Source of the DNA: Macrostomum lignano
Lineage: Eukaryota
Direction: 5' to 3'
DNA length: 64,000 nucleotides
NCBI GenBank assembly: GCA_002269645.1
Contig: NIVC01000032.1
Coordinates: 744,001 to 808,000, forward strand
Shown: positions 27,730 to 57,000 of the stretch, piece by piece
Layout of the letters: each line of letters starts with the position of its first letter
How positions within the stretch are numbered: the first letter of the stretch is position 1
Program-made: the position numbers and the translations under genes
Notes under the pieces: model-generated
Seen by the model: the letters and a program-made list of their open reading frames with translations, nothing else
Databases searched by the model: none
What the model was told of the DNA's origin: nothing

Positions 27730-27806
27730 ATGGAGGAAAAAATAGAATGGAGTGCTAATCTTAACTTTTAACATCCCTTTCCCCCTCGTTCCTTCCTATT
27801 GGCTCA
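27730..27806. mobile_element. Partial copy (29-bp internal deletion) of the TIR found at 29641 and 29846
   Basis: catggaggaaaaaatagaatggagtgctaatc|ttaacttttaacatccctttccccctcgttccttcctattggctc aligns to both arms of the 29641-29950 element. Confidence 0.8.
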
Positions 27807-28188
27807 AGGCATGTGCGTTTTGCTCACCTGATGATGATGCTGGTTGGAGCTGAGCCGTCAAGTGCTGCAGAGTGTGAAGCTGTTGCTGAAGATCCTGACG
27901 ATGGCCTTCCAGGACTTGCAGTTCGGGCAGCTCCACCTCCTGTCGCAGCGCCGCCAGCCGGTCGCTCCCCGCCCCCGGAGGCGCCTCGCCCGGGCTGCCG
28001 ATGCCGTCCTCGGCGTCCGGAGAAGAAGTCATCTCGGAGTTGTTTAAGTCTTCGTCAGCTTGCTCTAAACCGAGTGCAGTAGACAAGCGCTTGGCGAGCT
28101 GTTGTTTGCGGCCCGTAGTAGGCAGGCCTCTGTTTCGCAGCTCAGCCTTGAGTTGGTGCACGTTTAGTCGCTTTGGGCTGGCACTCAT
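27796..28188 (-). CDS. SAP-domain plus coiled-coil ORF (130 aa), probably a truncated TE-derived (gag-like) or captured fragment
   Basis: ATG in GCCACCGCCATG context. LNVHQLKAELRNRGLPTTGRKQQLAKRL matches the SAP consensus and is followed by heptad-rich RLAALRQEVELPELQVLE. The stop codon lies inside the flanking TIR-like sequence. Confidence 0.7.
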   Translation of the reverse strand: MSASPKRLNVHQLKAELRNRGLPTTGRKQQLAKRLSTALGLEQADEDLNNSEMTSSPDAEDGIGSPGEAPPGAGSDRLAALRQEVELPELQVLEGHRQDLQQQLHTLQHLTAQLQPASSSGEQNAHALSQ

Positions 28189-28397
28189 GGCGGTGGCTGA
28201 GCAAAAAATTGAGAAATGGCGACGGAGACAAGCCGGGCCGGGTGCAGAGGCTTTAGCTGGCTGGCGCGGCCAACACCCCCAGACCTCAACCCCCGCCAAA
28301 GTACAGCGATATGTACAGCGGCACCCCCCGGCGTGTCTAACACACCTTACTCAGAGAGTAACGATTGCATTACCTAAAGCTAAACAGCATCTGAGTG

Positions 28398-28541
28398 AAT
28401 GTCACTGGGTTAATGTCACTGAGCCAATGTCACTGGGCCAATGTCACTGGGCCAATGTCACTGGGCCAATGTCACTGGGCCAATGTCACTGGGCCAATGT
28501 CACTGGGCCAATGTCACTGGGCCAATGTCACTGGGCCAATG
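28398..28541 (+). repeat. 14-bp VNTR (AATGTCACTGGGCC)x10 at the 5' end of the NHL ORF
   Basis: Direct count: 10 units plus a partial unit; each carries ATG and most carry CCAAT. Confidence 0.95.
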
Positions 28542-29399
28542 TCGAGAGACACTGCGGTGAACGCGACATCCGAGGAGATAGACGCTGCTGAGAGAGAGAG
28601 ACTGTTGGAACCGATGGTCTTCAGTCACGAGGTGAAGCTGGATGGCTATGTTGCATGGCTGGCTGTGTGCAGCGACACCAGCGGATTCGTTGGTGACCGC
28701 TCAGGCCATGTGGTTCCCGCCGACTCAGCGGGAATACGTAATTCCTTGCCTCCTCCCTGCATCCTGGCATCATTCTCTTCCAACAGAGACCACCTACTGG
28801 TGCTGTCGGTGGACGGCTCACAGAAGTTGCGATGCCACTGCAACATCGACTGGAAGAATATCATCCGTGGCCTTCACTGCGACATCTGTGGAATCGGCGG
28901 CAACGCAGCCTCCGTGTTTGTGTCCAGTGGAAACAAAATTGCTGCATTCAGCAAAACGACTTGGCAGATGGAGACGGTCATCACGCTGTCTCAGCTTCCT
29001 GATGCTCGACTGGGTAACCTGGTGACTCACGACAACTGCATCCTGGTGAGAGACTGGAAGCACAAGCAGGTGCACAGAGTGCGCATCGACACCCAGCAGC
29101 TGGTGGCCTCTTTCCCGACTCAGCGTTCCGGCCTACGACAGTTTGGTGGTCCAGCCGATGTGGCCGTCGACAGCAGAGGCCGCCTGTTCGTGAGTGAATT
29201 CGCTGGTCACTCAGTGCGAGCGGTGGCTGCAGACGACGGGTCGCTGCTGTGGACTCTGGGGACTCCGGGCGAGAGCGGCAGTGGAGACGGCAGATTCAAC
29301 AGACCATGGGGTCTGGCGGTGGTGACGGGAGGTCCGCGCGAGCAGCTGGTGTTGGCTGACTTTATGAATAGCAGACTGCAGGTGTTCAGTTCATCCTAA
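28413..29399 (+). CDS. Intronless NHL-repeat beta-propeller protein (start uncertain: 28413-28539)
   Basis: FGGPADVAVDSRGRLFVSEFAGHSVRAV and GSGDGRFNRPWGLAV...LVLADFMNSRLQVF are NHL repeats; the frame is open for more than 280 codons beyond the VNTR. Confidence 0.8.
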   Translation: MSLSQCHWANVTGPMSLGQCHWANVTGPMSLGQCHWANVTGPMSRDTAVNATSEEIDAAERERLLEPMVFSHEVKLDGYVAWLAVCSDTSGFVGDRSGHVVPADSAGIRNSLPPPCILASFSSNRDHLLVLSVDGSQKLRCHCNIDWKNIIRGLHCDICGIGGNAASVFVSSGNKIAAFSKTTWQMETVITLSQLPDARLGNLVTHDNCILVRDWKHKQVHRVRIDTQQLVASFPTQRSGLRQFGGPADVAVDSRGRLFVSEFAGHSVRAVAADDGSLLWTLGTPGESGSGDGRFNRPWGLAVVTGGPREQLVLADFMNSRLQVFSSS

Positions 29400-43483: not shown

Positions 43484-45123
43484 AGCAGTTGACTTAAACT
43501 AAACTGTTAATTGTGATCTTTTCATAGTGACGCTTGGCAGCAAGGATTTAAATAATTGCGCTTGATTACATATTTGTTCGGATATCTGCTAGATAATATC
43601 TTGATAGACTAAATATAACAAAAAACGCTAGTTTAGCTACTTACTGTAAGTAGAATAACATGGTTTTTTAGTTTCTTTTAATTGAAGGCTAATGCAAAAT
43701 TGTAAAGATTGCTTTGTATACTACAATGATAACGAGTTGAACTCTTGGTTTGCAATAATTGCTTTATTTTGTTTTCTATGTAGTACTACAGTAACTTGTG
43801 ATTGCTCGATTCTTGTGTCACATGTTCTGCAGAATTTCATGAGCAAGAATTGCATGCATCTGTAAATATTTTATGTCGCTAAAACAATACTTAGAAATTC
43901 TGTCGTTTTTTACTGCGTGTTACTTTTTAGGAGTAAATAAACTGATCACCGTTTAAGTTCGAGTTCTGACTTATTTATAGTTTTCTAAACATAATCAATA
44001 ATAGATTAAAAACTACACTGCCCGTTTTGTAAATTGAATTGTTATTCTTAGTATAACCTATTTTAGTTGTTTAATTCTTTACTCTCACCTCATTCAAAAT
44101 TCATAATTTTTTCGAGTGAACTGAGCTAAATTTATTTGTTTATCCACTCCGTTTTATTAGCCGATCTATTTGTCGCTTTTCCTTTACCGCATGCATTATT
44201 ATTTCCTTCAAAAGCTTTAGGATGTAGAAATCGCTAGTGATTTTCTACCCCTTGATTCGCATTGTTAATCCTGTATTTTACTTATTGTTTTTTTTCTGGG
44301 AATATACGACTCACCAAGTTGTATTATTAAAAATCTATTTATTTATCCGTTGTGTCGTGATAATTAAAATTAATCTCGTGCTTCAAAACTTAAATTGGCG
44401 CCAAGATATTATTCTTTGTTGACGTCATTATCGAAAGAAAATTCAAACAAGGTTTATTAGGATTTCAGTTCCCGTCGAGTCGTCGTACTTTTGTCTTAAA
44501 TTCAAATTTTTGCAGTTCGTTAAAACCAAATTAGTTTTGGCGCCAATTCAAAATATTCGCTTAAATATTTGTTTGATAAGTTAGTTGTGTGAAAAGAATT
44601 AAATCTTCATATAAACAAATAACAAAATTGTCTAAATACCTTAATAGTACATTTAATTAAAATTTTATCTAGAGTAAAGTACTTTAAATTTCGCTGAGCA
44701 TTCTGGATTTTATTACTTACTAAATTTGGTTAACTTGCTGCACTCATCCCTTGTAATTAATAACCTTAATTAGTAAATCACAAATTGTCGACTATGATAT
44801 CCTAAATAATTGAGTCAAATACATTTCGCTTCATTCAATGACTTTAACGCCTTTAATTACTGATGAGCCATTGGACTGAATTAAACCATCTGAGTCGTTT
44901 TTTGTCTGAATTTATTTTTACCCAATTATTGTTCCTTCTGTACAAAGCTTACTACGATACATATCGGCTATTTACAATAGCTGGTATTTTTGACATTAAA
45001 TAATTATAAAAATTGAAGACAAAAAAAAATTCGATGCCTACGTACTGCAAAAACAGATAAGGGGTAACTCGATTAAAACTAATTAACAATTGATACAATA
45101 GTTTTCAGGCTGGTAAAAAGTTT

Positions 45124-45195
45124 CTCCCCGACCGGGAATCGAACCCGGGCCTTCCACGTGACAGGCGGAGATACTGACCACTATACTATCGAGGA
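45124..45195 (-). tRNA. trnD-GTC: tRNA-Asp(GTC), 72 nt, intact cloverleaf
   Basis: TCCTCGATAGTATAGTGGTCAGTATCTCCGCCTGTCACGTGGAAGGCCCGGGTTCGATTCCCGGTCGGGGAG. All stems pair, the anticodon is GTC, A and B boxes are present, and a T5 Pol III terminator lies 4 nt downstream (45115-45119). Confidence 0.96.
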
Positions 45196-45232
45196 GTTAC
45201 TTAACGGAAAAGATGTTTTGGTATATAAAGAT

Positions 45233-48200
45233 TCAACCAAACTGCAGGCGCTCTATGTAGAAAAACGTCTGATTTGGCAAGACGGAGATTTTTCGAAATT
45301 TGTCGATGCAGACAAATGTCAGCTTGTCGTTCTTTTTAAGCCGCCTAACGCCGTACAGAATGCATTTAGTGAAGGCGCCAGCCAGATGGCTCTGCTCGCA
45401 GTGGATCCAATTGTTGTTGTTTAATTGAATGGAAGTCTCCACTGGCATATCTGTGATGTCGTCGCGGAATGTAACCTGAGAAAAATTGATGATTCGAAAT
45501 GATTTCAATTAGCCTTAGTCCAAGATAAAAGCAGCTTATCAAATGAAATCAATTAATGCGAAGAAGGTGTGTGATGTTCTACCTGAGGCGTGTTATGGAC
45601 TCCCTGAGGTGTGATATGGACTCCCTGAGGCGTGTTATGGACTCTGAGGTGTGTTATGGGCCCTCTGAGGTGTGTAATGAGCCATCTGAAGTGTGTTATG
45701 GACTCCCTGAAGTGTGTTACTGTTATGGACTCCATGGGGTGTGTTATGGGCCCTCTGAGGTGTGTTATGAGGAGCTGTCTGAAGTGTGTTATGGGCTGCC
45801 TGAAGGTGTGTTATGAGCCTCTGAGGTTGTGTTATGAACTCCCTGAGGTGGGCTTTATTTTGGGGCAACCCAAGCTGTGTCAATTAATATGGTAATTCTG
45901 TCGAAACTTGAAAAAATTCATTTCTAATTAACAGCTCAGCAAAAACCAACTCACCTGTGCAAATACTCGATACACTCCCAGATGATTAATAATTAGTTTC
46001 GCCATCTGGCCATCGTGATGAAGCTGTGCAAATTCTTTAGACCTGTTGCGCATCGAGTAGCCTCTTGCTGAAGGCTTGATGCTGTCTTCTGTTAGGGGTC
46101 CGAAACTGTGGCCTGAATTGGGAAGGTGAACAGTGATTCATTCGGTTTTTTAGCAAGGTGATGGGGCTGATTTTAGGTGCAGTTGTTGATCGAAAGGGTA
46201 GTGTAGTGGATGGATCTGGGTAGTTTATTGCAACACAAAGCATGGGTTGAGTAGTTTAGAGGATTAATTTGGCTGTTTAGTGGATGGTTTATGTTGCTTA
46301 GTCAGTAGATGAGGTTATGATGTGGATTAGGCAGTTTAACAGAATTGTCATCTTTGCTCCCGGCAACTCTCACCCGTGGTGACGTAATCCGTTCCTTGCA
46401 GACAACCATTGTCGAGTCTTCTTTTGCCCATCGTTGAATGACACACGTCCATTAGCTTGGTTTGAAACACAAGTCGCATCCATGCCTGAAGAAATTGTAT
46501 GAAATAATAGAAAATTCGTCATCAACTACTACATGTATTGAGAAAAATAAAAGTAGTGGAGCCATGATCAATTTAGAATTATTTCGCGTAGTTCAGATGG
46601 AGAACTACATTCACTATCGATACCACTTATTATTCGAATTCCACGTAAAATCGCACATCGAAAATGTAGATAACTGTAATTTGCATGTAAATGTACACCA
46701 CTAAAACGTCACATCATCAAGATGCTACACCATCGAAATGACACACAATCAAAACATCATACCATCAAAAAACGTCACAAAATCGCAGCATCACATCATC
46801 AAGACGTCGCACCATCGAGACGTCACGTCATCGAGACGTCACACCATCGAGACGTCAAATCATCTAGACGTCACTCCATCAAAACGTCACACCATCGAGA
46901 CCTCAAATCATCGAGGCGTCACACCATCGAGACGTCACACCATCGAGACGTCACATCATCGAGACGTCACACTATCGAGATGTCACATCATCGAGACGTC
47001 ACACCATAGAAACCTCACACCATCCAAACGTCACACCATCGAGACATCACACAATCGAGACGTCACACCATCGAGACGTCACACCATCGAGACATCACAC
47101 AATCGAGACGTCACACCATCGAGACGCCACGCCATCAAGACGTCACACCATAGAAACCTCACACAATCACGTCACATTATCAAACCGTTTCATTATCGAT
47201 AAGTAACATCAGCTTTCGAAATAATTCCATAGAATTTCATACCCGGTCGCTTTCCAGTTTAACAGAGGCCAAGTGCTCCTGCCGAGCAAGACGCAGAGCG
47301 ACACAGGCGACACTAAAAGCTGCAACTAGCGCTGTTTGAGCGAACAGCCAGAGTCTCGGATCGTTCAGTCGACATTTAGAAATTGTTCTTGTATTTTTTG
47401 AGTTCGTCGTTGCTGCTTCTTTTGTTGATCGATTTCGTTTTTCTTTTTTTCGATTTTTAACTTTGGAATGAGTTGTTGTTGTTGCCGAAGTTTGCACTGT
47501 TGGTTTTTCAGTTGACTGCAACTGCTGGTCTATTGCATCATCAACTCGTTCGCTGTGGATACAGGTGTACAGACTACTGCTGACGCTGTTCCGATTGTCA
47601 AGGTGCTGCGGTTGCTGTTGAGACTGGTTTATCGACTGCTCGTGCTGCTGTGGCCGAGGCGGGAGCTTCGGAGGGCAGGCTATTCTGCAGTTCGCGATCG
47701 CAAGAGGCAGGATTACGCGGAGATAGGACGGAATGTACTTTTAATTTTAATTGTTTTCTCTGTCAGGCTGGGTAGCTTTTGGGATGGGAAGCTGTCAGGG
47801 TGGTTACTACTTTGACAGCGGCAAACCATCCTGACAACTACCCATCCTGACAACTACCCATCCTGACAACTACCCATCCTGACAACTACCCATCCTGACA
47901 ACTACCCATCCTGACAACTACCCATCCTGACAACTACCCATCCTGACAACTACCCATCCTGACAACTACCCATCCTGACAACTACCCATCCTGACAACTA
48001 CCCATCCTGACAACTACCCATCCTGACAACTACCCATCCTGACAACTACCCATCCTGACAACTACCCATCCTGACAACTACCCATCCTGACAACTACCCA
48101 TCCTGACAACTACCCATCCTGACAACTACCCATCCTGACAACTACCCATCCTGACAACTACCCATCCTGACAACTACCCATCCTGACAACTACCCATCCT

Positions 48201-48763
48201 GACAACTACCCATCCTGACAACTACCCATCCTGACAACTACCCATCCTGACAACTACCCATCCTGACAACTACCCATCCTGGCAACTACCCATCCTGACA
48301 ACTACCCATCCTCTGACAGCTAAAACCATCCTGACAGCTAACCTTAGCTAAACAGCTAAGAGTGGGTAGCTGTCAGAGTGGGTAGCTGTCAGAGAGTGGT
48401 AGCTGTCAGAGTGGGTAGCTGTCAGAGTGGGTAGCTGTCAGAGTGGGTAGCTGTCAGAGTGGGTAGCTGTCAGAGTGGGTAGCTGTCAGAGAGTGGTAGC
48501 TGTCAGAGTGGGTAGCTGTCAGAGTGTGTAGCTGTCAGAGAGTGGTAGCGTCAGAGTGGGTAGCTGTCAGAGTGTGTAGCTGTCAGAGTGGTAGCTGTCA
48601 GAGTGGGTAGCTGTAAGAGTGGGTAGCTGTCAGAGAGTAGTAGCTGTCAGGGTAGCTGTCAGAGTGGTAGATGTCAGTGTGGGTAGCTGTCAGGATGGGC
48701 AGTTGATATTTACTTTTTAAGAGTAATTTACCTTGGAGGAACTGGCGGACCATTTCCCTCCAT
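45233..48763 (-). CDS. TNF-superfamily ligand (Eiger/ectodysplasin-like), type II membrane protein, about 318 aa
   Basis: Exons 48763-48732, 47684-47243, 46455-46374, 46112-45955, 45475-45233, all GT-AG with phases 2,0,1,0 (319 codons). A single TM (LWLFAQTALVAAFSVACVAL) follows a 121-aa cytoplasmic part. C-terminal TNF homology domain: LIINHLGVYRVFAQVTF...WIHCEQS...TKCILYGVRRLKKNDKL...NQTFFYIERL. The start is uncertain because the frame stays open to an acceptor at 48795. Confidence 0.82.
45585..45850 (+). repeat. About 21-bp minisatellite (GAGGTGTGTTATGGACTCCCT)n, TNF intron 4
   Basis: Direct inspection. Confidence 0.88.
46705..47180 (+). repeat. 16-bp CpG-rich minisatellite (GACGTCACACCATCGA)n, TNF intron 2
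   Basis: Direct inspection. Confidence 0.92.
47825..48700. repeat. Two related 16-bp arrays in inverted orientation, TNF intron 1: (GACAACTACCCATCCT)n at 47825-48310 and (AGAGTGGGTAGCTGTC)n at 48358-48700
   Basis: The reverse complement of unit 2 (GACAGCTACCCACTCT) matches unit 1 at 13/16 positions. Confidence 0.92.
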
Positions 48764-49134
48764 CCTTGTATTCGATTTCAGAGTCAGCAGGTTTCTATTA
48801 GCATGAAGAGGTGAAGTTCTTTATGTTGAAACTTCGACCGTATGGGCAGTCATTTATGCAAGTAAAGTTTTACCACTCTGCCACTGAAGATGAAAATCAG
48901 AATTTGTGTAATGTACACGCACAAGTATAGGCGCAAAATGTAGCATAAACAGGGTTAAACGTTGTAAATAAAATTATAAAATGAATTTCAGACTTTTGGC
49001 CTTTGAAAGCGGATGATAAGAGTTGAGTGAAATTTAGGTTCAGATAAGTATCATAGCTGGATAGCACAATGGTGCACACCGAGGAGAGAGGTAGGAGACA
49101 GGTGTAGCGAGGTGGCTAGGTGGAGGGATATGGA

Positions 49135-50485
49135 GAGATGTGGAGAGACGTAGAGAGACGTAGAGAGACGTGGAGAGACGTAGAGAGACGTAGAGAGATG
49201 CGGAGAGACGTAGAGAGACGTAGAGAGACGTAGAGAGACGTGGAGAGACGTAGAGAGACGTAGAGAGATGCGGAGAGACGTAGAGAGACGTAGAGAGAGA
49301 TGCGGAGAGACGTAGAGAGACGCGGAGAGACCTAGAGAGACGTAGAGAGACGCGGAGAGACGTAGAGAGACGTAGAGAGACGCGGAGAGACGTAGAGAGA
49401 GATGCGGAGAGACGTAGAGAGACGTAGAGAGACGCGGAGAGACGTAGAGAGACGCGGAGAGACGTAGAGAGACGTGGAGAGACGTGGAGAGACGTAGAGA
49501 GACGTGGAGAGACGTAGAGAGACGTAGAGAGATGCGGAGAGACGTGGAGAGACGTAGAGAGACGTTGAGAGACGTATAGGGACGTGAAGGGACGTAGAGA
49601 GACGTTGAGAGACGTAGAGAGACGTAGAGAGACGTGGAGAGACGTAGAGAGACGTGGAGAGACGTAGAGAGACGTGGAGAGACGTAGAGAGACGTGGAGA
49701 GACGTTGAGAGACGTAGAGAGACGTGGAGAGACGTAGAGAGACGCGGAGAGACGTAGAGAGACGCGGAGAGACGTAGAGAGACGTGGAGAGACGTAGAGA
49801 GACGTAGAGAGACGCGGAGAGACGTAGAGAGACGTGGAGAGACGTAGAGAGACGTGGAGAGACGTAGAGAGACGTAGAGAGACGTAGAGAGACGTTGAGA
49901 GACGTATAGGGACGTGAAGGGACGTAGAGAGACGTTGAGAGACGTAGAGAGACGTAGAGAGACGTGGAGAGACGTAGAGAGACGTGGAGAGACGTAGAGA
50001 GACGTGGAGAGACGTAGAGAGACGTGGAGAGACGTTGAGAGACGTAGAGAGACGTGGAGAGACGTAGAGAGACGTAAAGAGATGCGGAGAGACGTAGAGA
50101 GACGTGGAGAGACGTGGAGAGACGTAGAGAGACGTGGAGAGACGTAGAGAGACGTAGAGAGACGTGGAGAGACGTAGAGAGACGTGGAGAGACGTAGAGA
50201 GACGCGGAGAGACGTAGAGAGACGTGGAGAGACGTAGAGAGACGCGGAGAGACGTAGAGAGACGTGGAGAGACGTAGAGAGACGTAGAGAGACGTAGAGA
50301 GACGTAGAGAGACGCGGAGAGACGTAGAGAGACGCGGAGAGACGTAGAGAGACGCGGAGAGACGTAGAGAGACGCGGAGAGACGTAGAGAGACGCGGAGA
50401 GATGTAGAGAGACGTGGAGATGCGTAGAGAGACGCGGAGGGAAATTGAGAGAGGTGGAGAGTCGTGGAGAGACGTTGAGAGACGT
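49135..50485 (+). repeat. 10-bp minisatellite (GAGACGTAGA/GAGACGTGGA/GAGACGCGGA)n
   Basis: Direct inspection; source of the 523-aa ORF. Confidence 0.97.
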
Positions 50486-50909
50486 GGGTAGAGGTGAAGA
50501 GAAGAGCAACAAAGATGAGATATACCCCTGTATGTGATGCAAGATAGGAGGGAACTTAGTTAAAAATATTTGCGGAAAACCGAGCACTAATTCGAACTTT
50601 AATATTGACATATTTTGGACTAAAAATGGATGGACAATCCTAACATTCGGAATTTCATAGTGCAGACCAGATGGCCCGGCATTGCAATCTAATAACTTAC
50701 CGACTAAAGCGAAGCCGGATATGAATTCAAATGAGAAATTTTATCCAAAAATGGTGGCTCACTCAGAGCTGTCTTAACTGTCTATCAAGATTTGCTATCT
50801 CTTCCTTGAGCACAGAACCCACCGGCCTGTTATCTTGGATAGAATCAGATATTTTCTCAGAGCAGAGCTGTCTCAATAAAGCTTTGCCTCCTTCCTCACA
50901 GTGTCTTAG

Positions 50910-54011: not shown

Positions 54012-57000
54012 TTACTTTTCCAAGCTCTCCCGAGGCCTCCTGTCCGTATTCTGGTCTGCCGAGCCCCCCATCGGAGCTGCAACCGATCCAGCCACCCGGT
54101 CGCCAGCTCCGCCAGTCGTCCTCGCCTGCGACCGCGACAGGAACATGTCCTCGCGGCCAGCTCGATTGCGACGTCGGAAAAATCGTTTCAAACCCTTTTT
54201 GAACGGCTTGTAGGTGCCGCCGTAAATAGCCGCGTTGATGCTGGTGTGGCCCATGGCCAGCCAGGCCAGGCAAAACTCCACGCCTTCGCTGATGCTCGAC
54301 TTTCGCAGTGCGATGGAGATTTTGTAGGCAAAAAACGGCAACCAACAGACTAGGAAGCCGAGAATAACGCAAGCATTGGTTATCCATCCTCGAAGGCTCG
54401 ATCGCATGTTCGACCTTTTGTTTTGAGCAGTCTGACCACCGTTCAGAAGATTCTGTCCCTGTTCCGGGTTTTGATCTGGCAACGCTACCGGCTGCTGCGT
54501 GCCCAAACGCATTCGTCGGATATTGTTGACATGGCGTCGCGAGATGACAAAAATTGTCCCATAGCCAATCACCAGCATGAGCACCATGAACAGTATTAGA
54601 CCGATTCGAACCCCGAACAGGCTTAGGTCGACTTCGTTACGGCCTCGACAAGATTTCGTGTTAAACATCAGAGTGTTGGCGGTGAACTCGTAGTAATAAC
54701 CGCTGATGGGTACGAGACGCGTCGGTAAGAAACTGAGAAAAGCCAGCACGGTCCAAACCGCCGATACGATGACTGTAACTTTGCGCTTCGACATCATTCT
54801 ATCGTAACTGTAGGGCAGCTTAATCTGGTGCAGCTTGTCCAAACCGATTCCGATGGTAATCACTAGGGTGGCCGTCAGCATCAGGTAGTAGATCCACGAG
54901 CCAAAGTCCAGCTCGATCCGGTTGCCCGGTCCAAATCCGCTGACTGCGTAGCGAAATGCGAACAGTAAGAAGCACACGCCCGAGCCGAAGTCGCTGATTG
55001 CCAGGCTCAGCATGTAGATGCCCTGGTTAGTGCGAAGGGCCGGCGTATTGTAGAACACTAGCATGACGAGAAGGTTACTAGGCAGGGCTAGCACTGAAAT
55101 GGTGAAGACTAGAGCTATTCTCCAGCCAGACGACTCAATCTCGGTAAGGTTTCCGCAGCCTGGACAGTTTATCCATTCAACTGTAGCATTTTTGATGCAG
55201 CTGAAATGTTTAGAATCCGGTTGTTACAGGAATTAGTTTAAGAAAGTACACCATTTAACCCTCGATTTTGAACAAGGAGAAATTCGAAACTGACAAACTC
55301 CTCTTCAATATTGACACTCTATGGTCGGGCACTCAAAATCTACAATCAATATTGACAGATCAAGCTTCAATTTTGACAAACTCTGGTTCAATTTTGACAA
55401 TGCACGTTTAGTCAACTTCTCCTGGGAGAATTCGGCAACAAAGTAATCCAATGAAAGCTTGAACGGGGCTGAAGTGAGCTGTGCAAAATCAGCTTATTCT
55501 GACTTTGCTTTTTGGATCTACAAGTATTGATAAAATTTATTTTTCTCCATCCTTTAGACACACAGACTAAAATAGCCTGACTGGTTGGGCTGTAAAGTCT
55601 GATTCTATTTTGACAGAGTTGCTTCAAAACTGACACTCTATGGTTTGTGTACCCAAAAATTCCGCTTCATTTTTGACAACTCCGAATCAATATTGAACAG
55701 TTAACAATCAATTTTGACTAAGACATTTTTTGAAATAGATTTTGACAATTTTTACTAAGATTTCTCTCTTGAGGGGGGGTACTTGCTATTTGGGAGAAGG
55801 GGTACTGGCTGCATGTATCTACGAGTACATGTATGGGAATATTTTTATCCAGGGATGCTTGCTATCTGGGTGGATGTTTGCTACCTGGATGATGCTTGCT
55901 ATCTGCAAGATGCTTGCTATCTGGGGATGCTTGCTATCTGGGTGGATGTTTGCTACCTGGATGATGCTTGCTATCTGGGTGGATGTTTGCTATCTGGGGA
56001 TGCTTGCTATCTGGGGGATGTTTGCTATCTGGGTGGATGCTTGCTATCTGGGGGATGCTTGCTATCTGGGGGATGCTTGCTATCTGGGTGGATGCTTGCT
56101 ATCTGGGTGGATGCTTGCTATCTGGGTGGATGCTTGCTGTCTTGGGATGTTAAATGACCGGCCTTTTGCTAGAGTCCCTTGAGAGAGCAGGGACTCTAGC
56201 AAGCATCCCTAAATAGAAATATTCCCATACATGTACTCGTAGATACATGCAGCCAGTACCCCTTCTCCCAAATAGCAAGTACCCCCCCCCTCAAGAGAGA
56301 AATCTTAGTAAAAATTGTCAAAATCTATTTCAAAAAATGTCTTAGTCAAAATTGATTGTAAACTGTTCAATATTGATTCGGAGTTGTCAAAAATGAAGCG
56401 GACTTTTTGGGTACACAAACCATAGTGTCAGTTTTGAAGCAACTCTGTCAAAATAGAATCAGACTTTGCAGCCCAACCAGTCAGGCTATTTTAGTCTGTG
56501 TGTCTAAAGGATGGAGAAAAATAAATTTTATCAATACTTGTAGATCCAAAAAGCAAAGTCAGAATAAGCTGATTTTGCACAGCTCACTTCAGCCCCGTTC
56601 AGGCTTTCATTGGATTACTTTGTTGCCGAATTCTCCCAGGAGAAGTTGACTAAACGTGCATTGTCAAAATTGAACCAGAGTTTGTCAAAATTGAAGCTTG
56701 ATCTGTCAATATTGATTGTAGATTTTGAGTGCCCGACCATAGAGTGTCAATATTGAAGAGGAGTTTGTCGGTTTCGAATTTCTCCTTGTTCAAAATCGAG
56801 GGTAAAATGGTGTATTAGCGCCTAAGTAAAGCACATATCTGCCCTGGAGCTTTATGAGAGATTCACGGGCCAACGGGAGATACATGGTATATATTCGCCT
56901 CGGTCAATAAACGAGACACCTCGAGCCTTTGACCCTAGACAACACAATAAATGGGAAATATGGTATGTATCTCCTAATCTATGTATGGTCTTAAGTGACG

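Follow-up and report, generated by a model that had tools for sequence, protein, structure and literature searches.

A five-exon gene on the minus strand of a 64-kb stretch of Macrostomum lignano DNA (hereafter the window, to whose positions all coordinates refer) encodes, in our assessment with a probability of about 0.88, a 328-residue membrane-anchored ligand of the TNF superfamily. This reading is founded on the exon structure, the family of the domain, the fold of the C-terminal two thirds of that domain, the hydropathy layout of the protein and its paralogy with published ligands, all of which the analysis establishes. The gene is of a known kind and had already been labelled TNF-like in a public database; the gain lies in a full-length model, now corrected to 328 residues. 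At the default 60-residue threshold, the list of open reading frames (ORFs) shows the locus as two fragments only (45233-45508 and 47237-47521), exactly as the first-pass annotation, which was made from the letters of the window, had remarked when it proposed a hidden ligand gene at this place.

Membership in the TNF family

Comparison of the spliced protein with Pfam, which had been suggested as a check on the proposal, returned a single match above threshold, namely the TNF family (PF00229), at 26.5 bits, where the gathering score is 23 bits (E = 6.6e-6). The match covers residues 228-320 of the protein and positions 19-122 of the 127 in the profile, and a protein in which exon 5 is not followed as far as the stop falls short of the threshold. 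Together with the match of the joined protein to a public M. lignano protein, A0A1I8G0K9 (E = 5.6e-196), this similarity lies well beyond chance. An exhaustive phmmer search with residues 143-328 against 1.84 billion representative proteins yielded four proteins at E <= 0.001, all of them M. lignano proteins with a TNF-profile (TNF_2) domain: the gene's own cluster and three others (6e-6, 6e-5 and 7.8e-5).

A family profile composed of eight Macrostomum sequences was searched against the sequences of the PDB, and significant E-values were obtained from TNF ligands only. The strongest match was to an APRIL/BAFF single-chain construct (2e-24), followed by EDA-A2 (1.6e-9), EDA-A1 (9e-9), the Eiger of S. 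frugiperda (1.2e-7), BAFF (2e-6), APRIL (7e-6), Drosophila Eiger (2.6e-4), RANKL (1e-3) and TNF (0.05). The domain is closest to the EDA/APRIL/BAFF/Eiger group.

A word-indexed protein search, performed first with the protein by itself and afterwards with the alignment of paralogues, recovered two M. lignano clusters only, and our second AlphaFold2 model was therefore built on a shallow alignment of seven sequences. In this model the predicted local distance difference test (pLDDT), averaged over blocks of ten residues, is 71-88 across the last ~105 residues (approximately residues 224-328), and nine strands are formed. Foldseek comparison of the model with the PDB placed EDA-A1 and EDA-A2 first (best E = 2.4e-5, at a target-normalised TM-score of only ~0.5), followed by GITRL, 4-1BBL and Eiger; all 43 of the 43 top matches are TNF ligands. 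Over its C-terminal two thirds, the domain as modelled displays the jelly-roll beta-sandwich fold. Pfam, the family profile and the combined AlphaFold2 and Foldseek analysis therefore agree on the TNF homology domain that had been proposed for the C-terminus. Since TNF matches were returned by both the profile and the fold searches, where a complete lack of jelly-roll or TNF matches would have told against the proposal, the gene stands as a member of the TNF family.

Exon structure, public gene models and paralogues

The five minus-strand segments as first noted (48763-48732, 47684-47243, 46455-46374, 46112-45955 and 45475-45233) splice into a 957-nt ORF of 318 amino acids with a terminal TGA, and all of the introns between them begin with GT and end with AG. 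The proposal of five exons joined in frame at canonical sites was borne out in this respect, with one amendment: the junction given as 47243/46455 should be 47243/46485. With the exon-3 acceptor at 46485, the ORF extends to 987 nt and 328 amino acids, with all of its splice sites intact.

Exon 1 (48732-48763, minus strand like all the others; 32 nt) carries the ATG at 48763-48761 in the context acaaggATGG, with A at position -3 and G at +4, and encodes MEGNGPPVPP plus two nucleotides of the next codon. Its donor is gtaaat, and the intron behind it is in phase 2. A start codon within exon 2 was considered and rejected: because exon 2 lacks a Met codon in the reading frame and a stop 18 codons before its acceptor closes that frame, an exon with an upstream ATG is required. 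The same start is used in both of the public models, A0A1I8G0K9 and A0A1I8IC90. No counterpart of the 5' junction, 48732/47684, exists in the paralogue BOX15_Mlig009154g1; this junction is predicted from its splice sites, from the two public models and from the fact that the protein needs a start codon.

Exon 2 (47243-47684; 442 nt), whose product is identical to that of A0A1I8IC90, encodes a cytoplasmic tail rich in Pro, Gln, Thr and Lys, a transmembrane helix and a 14-residue stalk. The corrected exon 3 (46374-46485; 112 nt) contributes AWMRLVFQTK, a putative strand A, and a loop between Cys173 and Cys186. Exon 4 (45955-46112; 158 nt) contains a GPL motif and strands B', B and C as far as GVYRVFAQ, and exon 5 (45233-45475; 243 nt including the TGA at 45235-45233) encodes strands C to H and the end of the protein, TFFYIERLQFG.

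Both public models depart from this structure at the 3' end. A0A1I8G0K9 (UniProt, M. lignano, 317 residues, "TNF family profile domain-containing protein") differs from the window product at 5 of 317 residues (98.4% identity), ends 11 residues before the true C-terminus and is probably derived from a second genomic copy. Its cluster mate A0A1I8IC90, of 763 residues, is identical to the window product over residues 1-302, after which it exits exon 5 and splices across a tRNA gene into exons at 43522-37017 (minus strand) that consist largely of translated minisatellite arrays. It is apparently a chimera, a fusion, and no kinase domain was detected in it by Pfam despite its name, "Protein kinase domain-containing protein". 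As its downstream exons map to the same window, the window is the M. lignano locus of this model. Reading exon 5 to the stop restores the last strand, TFFYIERLQFG, the counterpart in the alignment of TFWGMVRM at the C-terminus of the paralogues, and lifts the Pfam TNF score over the threshold, below which A0A1I8G0K9 (20.2 bits) and A0A1I8IC90 (16.5 bits) remain. Judged by these alignments and scores, the 3' end of the model as first noted is better than that of either public model.

It had also been suggested that such a gene is easily missed by annotation. This does not hold as worded, since two UniProt models exist and one of them already bears a TNF-profile name, yet their 3' ends are defective and the published catalogue lacks the gene. 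Neither this gene nor the related A0A1I8IXE1 is among the ten M. lignano sequences in the 2020 catalogue of flatworm TNF ligands, for which some sequences had been reconstructed from RNA-seq reads (PMC7519573). One likely reason for the absence is that the public models score under the thresholds used there.

The paralogue sequences for our alignment were those of Bertevello et al. 2020 (PMC7519573, Data S3). For one of them, BOX15_Mlig009154g1, the locus was rebuilt as four exons, the translation of which exactly matches the annotated protein. Its introns (marked by slashes) fall at EH/KSIHLVID (phase 0), TK/(E)GNLGPL (phase 1) and YGQ/VSF (phase 0), and those of the present gene at DR/AWMRLVFQ, TT/(G)HSFGPL and FAQ/VTF match them in both position and phase (0, 1, 0). 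Owing to these shared intron positions and phases and to the paralogue alignment, the junctions 46374/46112 and 45955/45475 are supported. Significant similarity combined with a shared gene structure places the gene, as far as sequence comparison can do so, within a lineage-specific expansion of Macrostomum TNF ligands.

Like these ligands (PMC7519573; e.g., BOX15_Mlig009154g1 / PAA64699.1) from the same species, the protein has a type II layout, an xxHLVxD-like start of the ectodomain, a Cys-Cys loop, GPL, GVYR(V/I), a Cys pair at strands E and F, RR and a TF(F/W) end. Invariant positions in the alignment comprise Cys173, Cys186, Cys274, Cys286, the G and Y of GVY, and RR. The identity, however, is just 22-26%, and the cytoplasmic tail, which is split by the extra 5' intron, is 121 residues long as opposed to ~8 in BOX15_Mlig009154g1. 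The nearest paralogue is A0A1I8IXE1, with 29% identity over 212 residues, membrane anchor included. By alignment, no other member of the family diverges as far as this gene.

Several observations weigh against a TNF ligand at this locus. As a single sequence the protein is weakly similar to solved TNF ligands (APRIL alone was reached, at E = 0.21), and AlphaFold2 run from the single sequence was unusable (pLDDT 36). In the seven-sequence model, the construct's first 71 residues, including the putative strand A and the Cys loop, have a pLDDT under 50. The protein is missing a second Cys pair (GPLxC...C) that is carried by all seven of the aligned published paralogues, it has FFY where those seven mostly have FWG, and it has an unpaired extracellular Cys304. 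Support for expression and for the 5' junction would come entirely from splice-site logic and public gene models.

The same divergence, i.e., the loss of the second Cys pair, the change of FFG/FWG to FFY and the odd extracellular Cys, could befit a duplicate that is decaying or has lost its function; the locus would then be a paralogue that looks intact yet is not expressed, in a genome that is rich in repeats and was recently duplicated. The introns, mostly owing to minisatellite arrays, are swollen to 261-1047 nt versus 71-96 nt in BOX15_Mlig009154g1, and the gene is absent from a catalogue that was itself partly rebuilt from RNA-seq. We nevertheless regard such decay as improbable: the 987-nt ORF and every splice site are intact over five exons, the second genomic copy represented by A0A1I8G0K9 is open along all 317 modelled residues with five amino-acid differences, the core fold-determining residues are retained and the full-length product exceeds the Pfam threshold.

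As a tentative and rather doubtful suggestion, this gene and A0A1I8IXE1 may define a divergent subclade of Macrostomum TNF ligands that was overlooked by the published catalogue, the marks of which may be a long Pro-rich tail, an ectodomain from which one Cys pair has been lost and an altered C-terminal strand.

Protein architecture and comparison with known TNF ligands

The protein begins with a low-complexity cytoplasmic tail (residues 1-121) rich in Pro, Gln and Lys, which contains PxxP-type motifs (PPVPPR, PPKLPPRP) and a basic cluster, KVKNRKKEKRNR, N-terminal to the transmembrane segment; the N-terminus is not hydrophobic. The transmembrane segment predicted by the Kyte-Doolittle scale comprises residues 122-144 (47285-47353, minus strand), LWLFAQTALVAAFSVACVALRLA, and the 19-residue mean of 1.95 over residues 122-141 is the sole strong hydrophobic peak in the protein. 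The single peak and the basic cluster on its N-terminal side agree with the type II topology proposed by the first-pass annotation, with one anchor and a C-terminal ectodomain, as predicted from hydropathy. A stalk of 14 amino acids, RQEHLASVKLESDR (residues 145-158), lacks a dibasic site and is followed by the 170-residue TNF homology domain (residues 159-328). No collagen-like Gly-X-Y run occurs in the 328-residue sequence. The motifs singled out earlier (GKRR, GVYRVFAQVTF, WIHC...TKC and FFY) are all present in the joined protein. Of the conserved family motifs in the trimer core, the strand-C G-x-Y is represented by GVY, and the position of the strand-H FFG is occupied by FFY here and by FWG, FF, YFE or FLQ in the paralogues.

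The choice of the exon-3 acceptor determines how the ectodomain opens, and the shorter, 318-residue model could in principle be the main isoform, shed by a proprotein convertase at a GKRR site in its stalk. Acceptor 46455 (aaaccaag/CT) is a canonical AG which keeps the frame; it lies 30 nt downstream of 46485, both sites could serve, and GKRR is indeed dibasic. Yet acceptor 46485 (ttcttcag/GCATGG) has the better pyrimidine tract and is the start of exon 3 in both public models. It adds the ten residues AWMRLVFQTK, in which AWMRLVFQ aligns with the conserved segment (KSIHLVID, SMHFVLD, WIHVAID) that opens the ectodomain of Macrostomum TNF ligands; acceptor 46455 would thus skip residues that align with an xIHLVID segment conserved in all of the paralogues. 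Moreover, the first ectodomain intron coincides with the paralogue's position only under 46485. On account of its tract, the paralogue alignment and the shared intron position and phase, acceptor 46485 is better supported than 46455.

The site of the supposed cleavage fares no better. Rather than in the stalk, where it had been placed, GKRR (residues 178-181; 46417-46428, minus strand) lies within the conserved ectodomain loop enclosed by Cys173 and Cys186, both invariant in the paralogues, past the putative strand A and downstream of the xIHLVID segment. Furin requires Arg at P4, whereas GKRR has Gly at this position, and the furin consensus RX[KR]R has no match anywhere in the protein. Convertase shedding at GKRR is therefore unlikely, and a 318-residue main isoform released in this manner is very unlikely. 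For the 328-residue ligand, a mainly membrane-bound state, or release by a metalloprotease-type sheddase and not by a convertase at GKRR, would be expected, because the stalk is very short and devoid of a furin consensus.

In EDA, APRIL and BAFF, a Cys pair joins strands E and F, forming a disulfide in the solved structures. The corresponding residues here would be Cys274 (codon 45400-45398) and Cys286 (codon 45364-45362), which together span 45362-45400 on the minus strand and flank the predicted E-F hairpin, with strand E modelled at residues 275-279 and strand F at 283-294. The two residues are invariant in eight of the eight Macrostomum paralogues and align with the Cys pair of APRIL in the single-sequence comparison and with those of EDA, APRIL and BAFF in the family profile. 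The EDA-type pair recognised earlier in WIHC...TKC is thereby corroborated.

Of the known ligands, EDA (EDA-A1/EDA-A2; PDB 1rj7, 1rj8) provides the best structural match (2.4e-5) and the best match to a single domain in the profile search (1.6e-9). Like the present protein it is a type II membrane protein, and its FLQC...YNTC aligns with the Cys pair of this gene. Unlike EDA, the M. lignano protein is without a collagen-like Gly-X-Y region and a furin consensus in the stalk, and it carries a Cys-loop insertion of ~40 residues past the first strand; identity is ~21%.

APRIL and BAFF (TNFSF13 / TNFSF13B; PDB 4zch, 1xu1, 1kxg) supplied the sole solved match to the single sequence as well as the top profile match. 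Their frC...nsC aligns with ihC...tkC of this protein, and GVY...QV and L..GD.L are common to both, although here no furin site precedes the domain and the single-sequence match is weak (E = 0.21). Because APRIL and BAFF are known as vertebrate genes, the relation amounts at most to similarity at the level of the subgroup. Eiger (Drosophila, PDB 6zt0; S. frugiperda, 6i50), an invertebrate type II TNF ligand, was matched by the profile (2.6e-4 and 1.2e-7, respectively) and was recovered in the fold search too (4e-4 and 9.9e-4), but it is a weaker match than EDA in both searches.

That the domain belongs to another jelly-roll family resembling TNF, such as the C1q-domain proteins, is extremely improbable, for although the fold is common to C1q and TNF domains and the single-sequence similarity to solved TNF ligands is weak, Pfam and the fold search gave TNF matches and no support for a C1q-type domain (which was rejected on these grounds), the topology is type II with neither an N-terminal signal peptide-like segment nor a collagen repeat, and the relatives among the 1.84 billion representatives are TNF_2-profile proteins only.

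Genomic surroundings and implications

The gene is set among more than 25 minisatellite arrays in the 64 kb, with periods of 4-138 nt and lengths of up to 1.5 kb each. Intron 1 contains two 16-nt arrays, at 47826-48312 and 48359-48693 (~30 and ~21 copies), that are inverted relative to each other; as their 40-nt arms are 88% complementary, a long hairpin in the pre-mRNA intron may be possible. Just upstream of the gene, a 523-residue "ORF" (49040-50611, minus strand) is a translated 20/30-nt minisatellite (49133-50485, ~67 copies), an artefact of ORF listing and not a gene. On the other side, a tRNA-Asp(GTC) gene (45123-45196, minus strand; detected by ARAGORN and by Rfam tRNA at 58.2 bits) follows the TNF gene on its own strand, 37 nt past the stop codon. 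No AATAAA occurs after that stop until 44916-44911, beyond the tRNA, so the 3' untranslated region of the TNF mRNA may cross the tRNA gene.

No second TNF gene was found in the 64-kb window by tblastn with all of the paralogues. An uninterrupted ORF of 360 residues at 54012-55094 (minus strand) matches Pfam 7tm_1, the rhodopsin-family G protein-coupled receptors, over its full length (E = 1.8e-25) and is probably an intronless receptor gene. Two neighbouring ORFs on opposite strands, at 27796-28299 (minus) and 28395-29399 (plus), one with a SAP domain (E = 1.8e-9) and the other with NHL repeats (E = 1.1e-9), are probably exons of two more genes.

By analogy with characterised ligands, the 328-residue protein would span the plasma membrane, its C-terminus facing outwards, and would form a homotrimer through its jelly-roll core at the cell surface. 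Such a trimer could cluster a cysteine-rich TNF receptor on a neighbouring cell, which would signal through TRAF/JNK-type or death-domain pathways. A candidate is the NGFR-like TNF receptor of M. lignano, the one such receptor, equipped with a death domain, that was described in this species (PMC7519573); many Wengen-like receptors have been reported in a platyhelminth in a 2026 preprint (10.1101/2024.07.27.603686).

Knowledge of the family is unchanged by this gene. The practical yield is the corrected full-length model of 328 residues, in place of public models that are truncated or fused to minisatellite DNA. Free-living flatworms have retained TNF ligands of their own, whereas the parasitic species examined have yielded none (PMC7519573). 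A full and accurate inventory of the Macrostomum ligands therefore bears on how the receptor of the parasites came to sense host TNF, and it is also relevant to TNF signalling in an animal used as a model of regeneration. If the present gene and A0A1I8IXE1 do form a divergent subclade, the ligand could have a receptor specificity of its own, or reverse signalling through its tail, and it would join the candidates for an endogenous ligand of the single NGFR-like TNF receptor of flatworms, a receptor proposed to have been redirected by parasitic flatworms to the TNF of their hosts.

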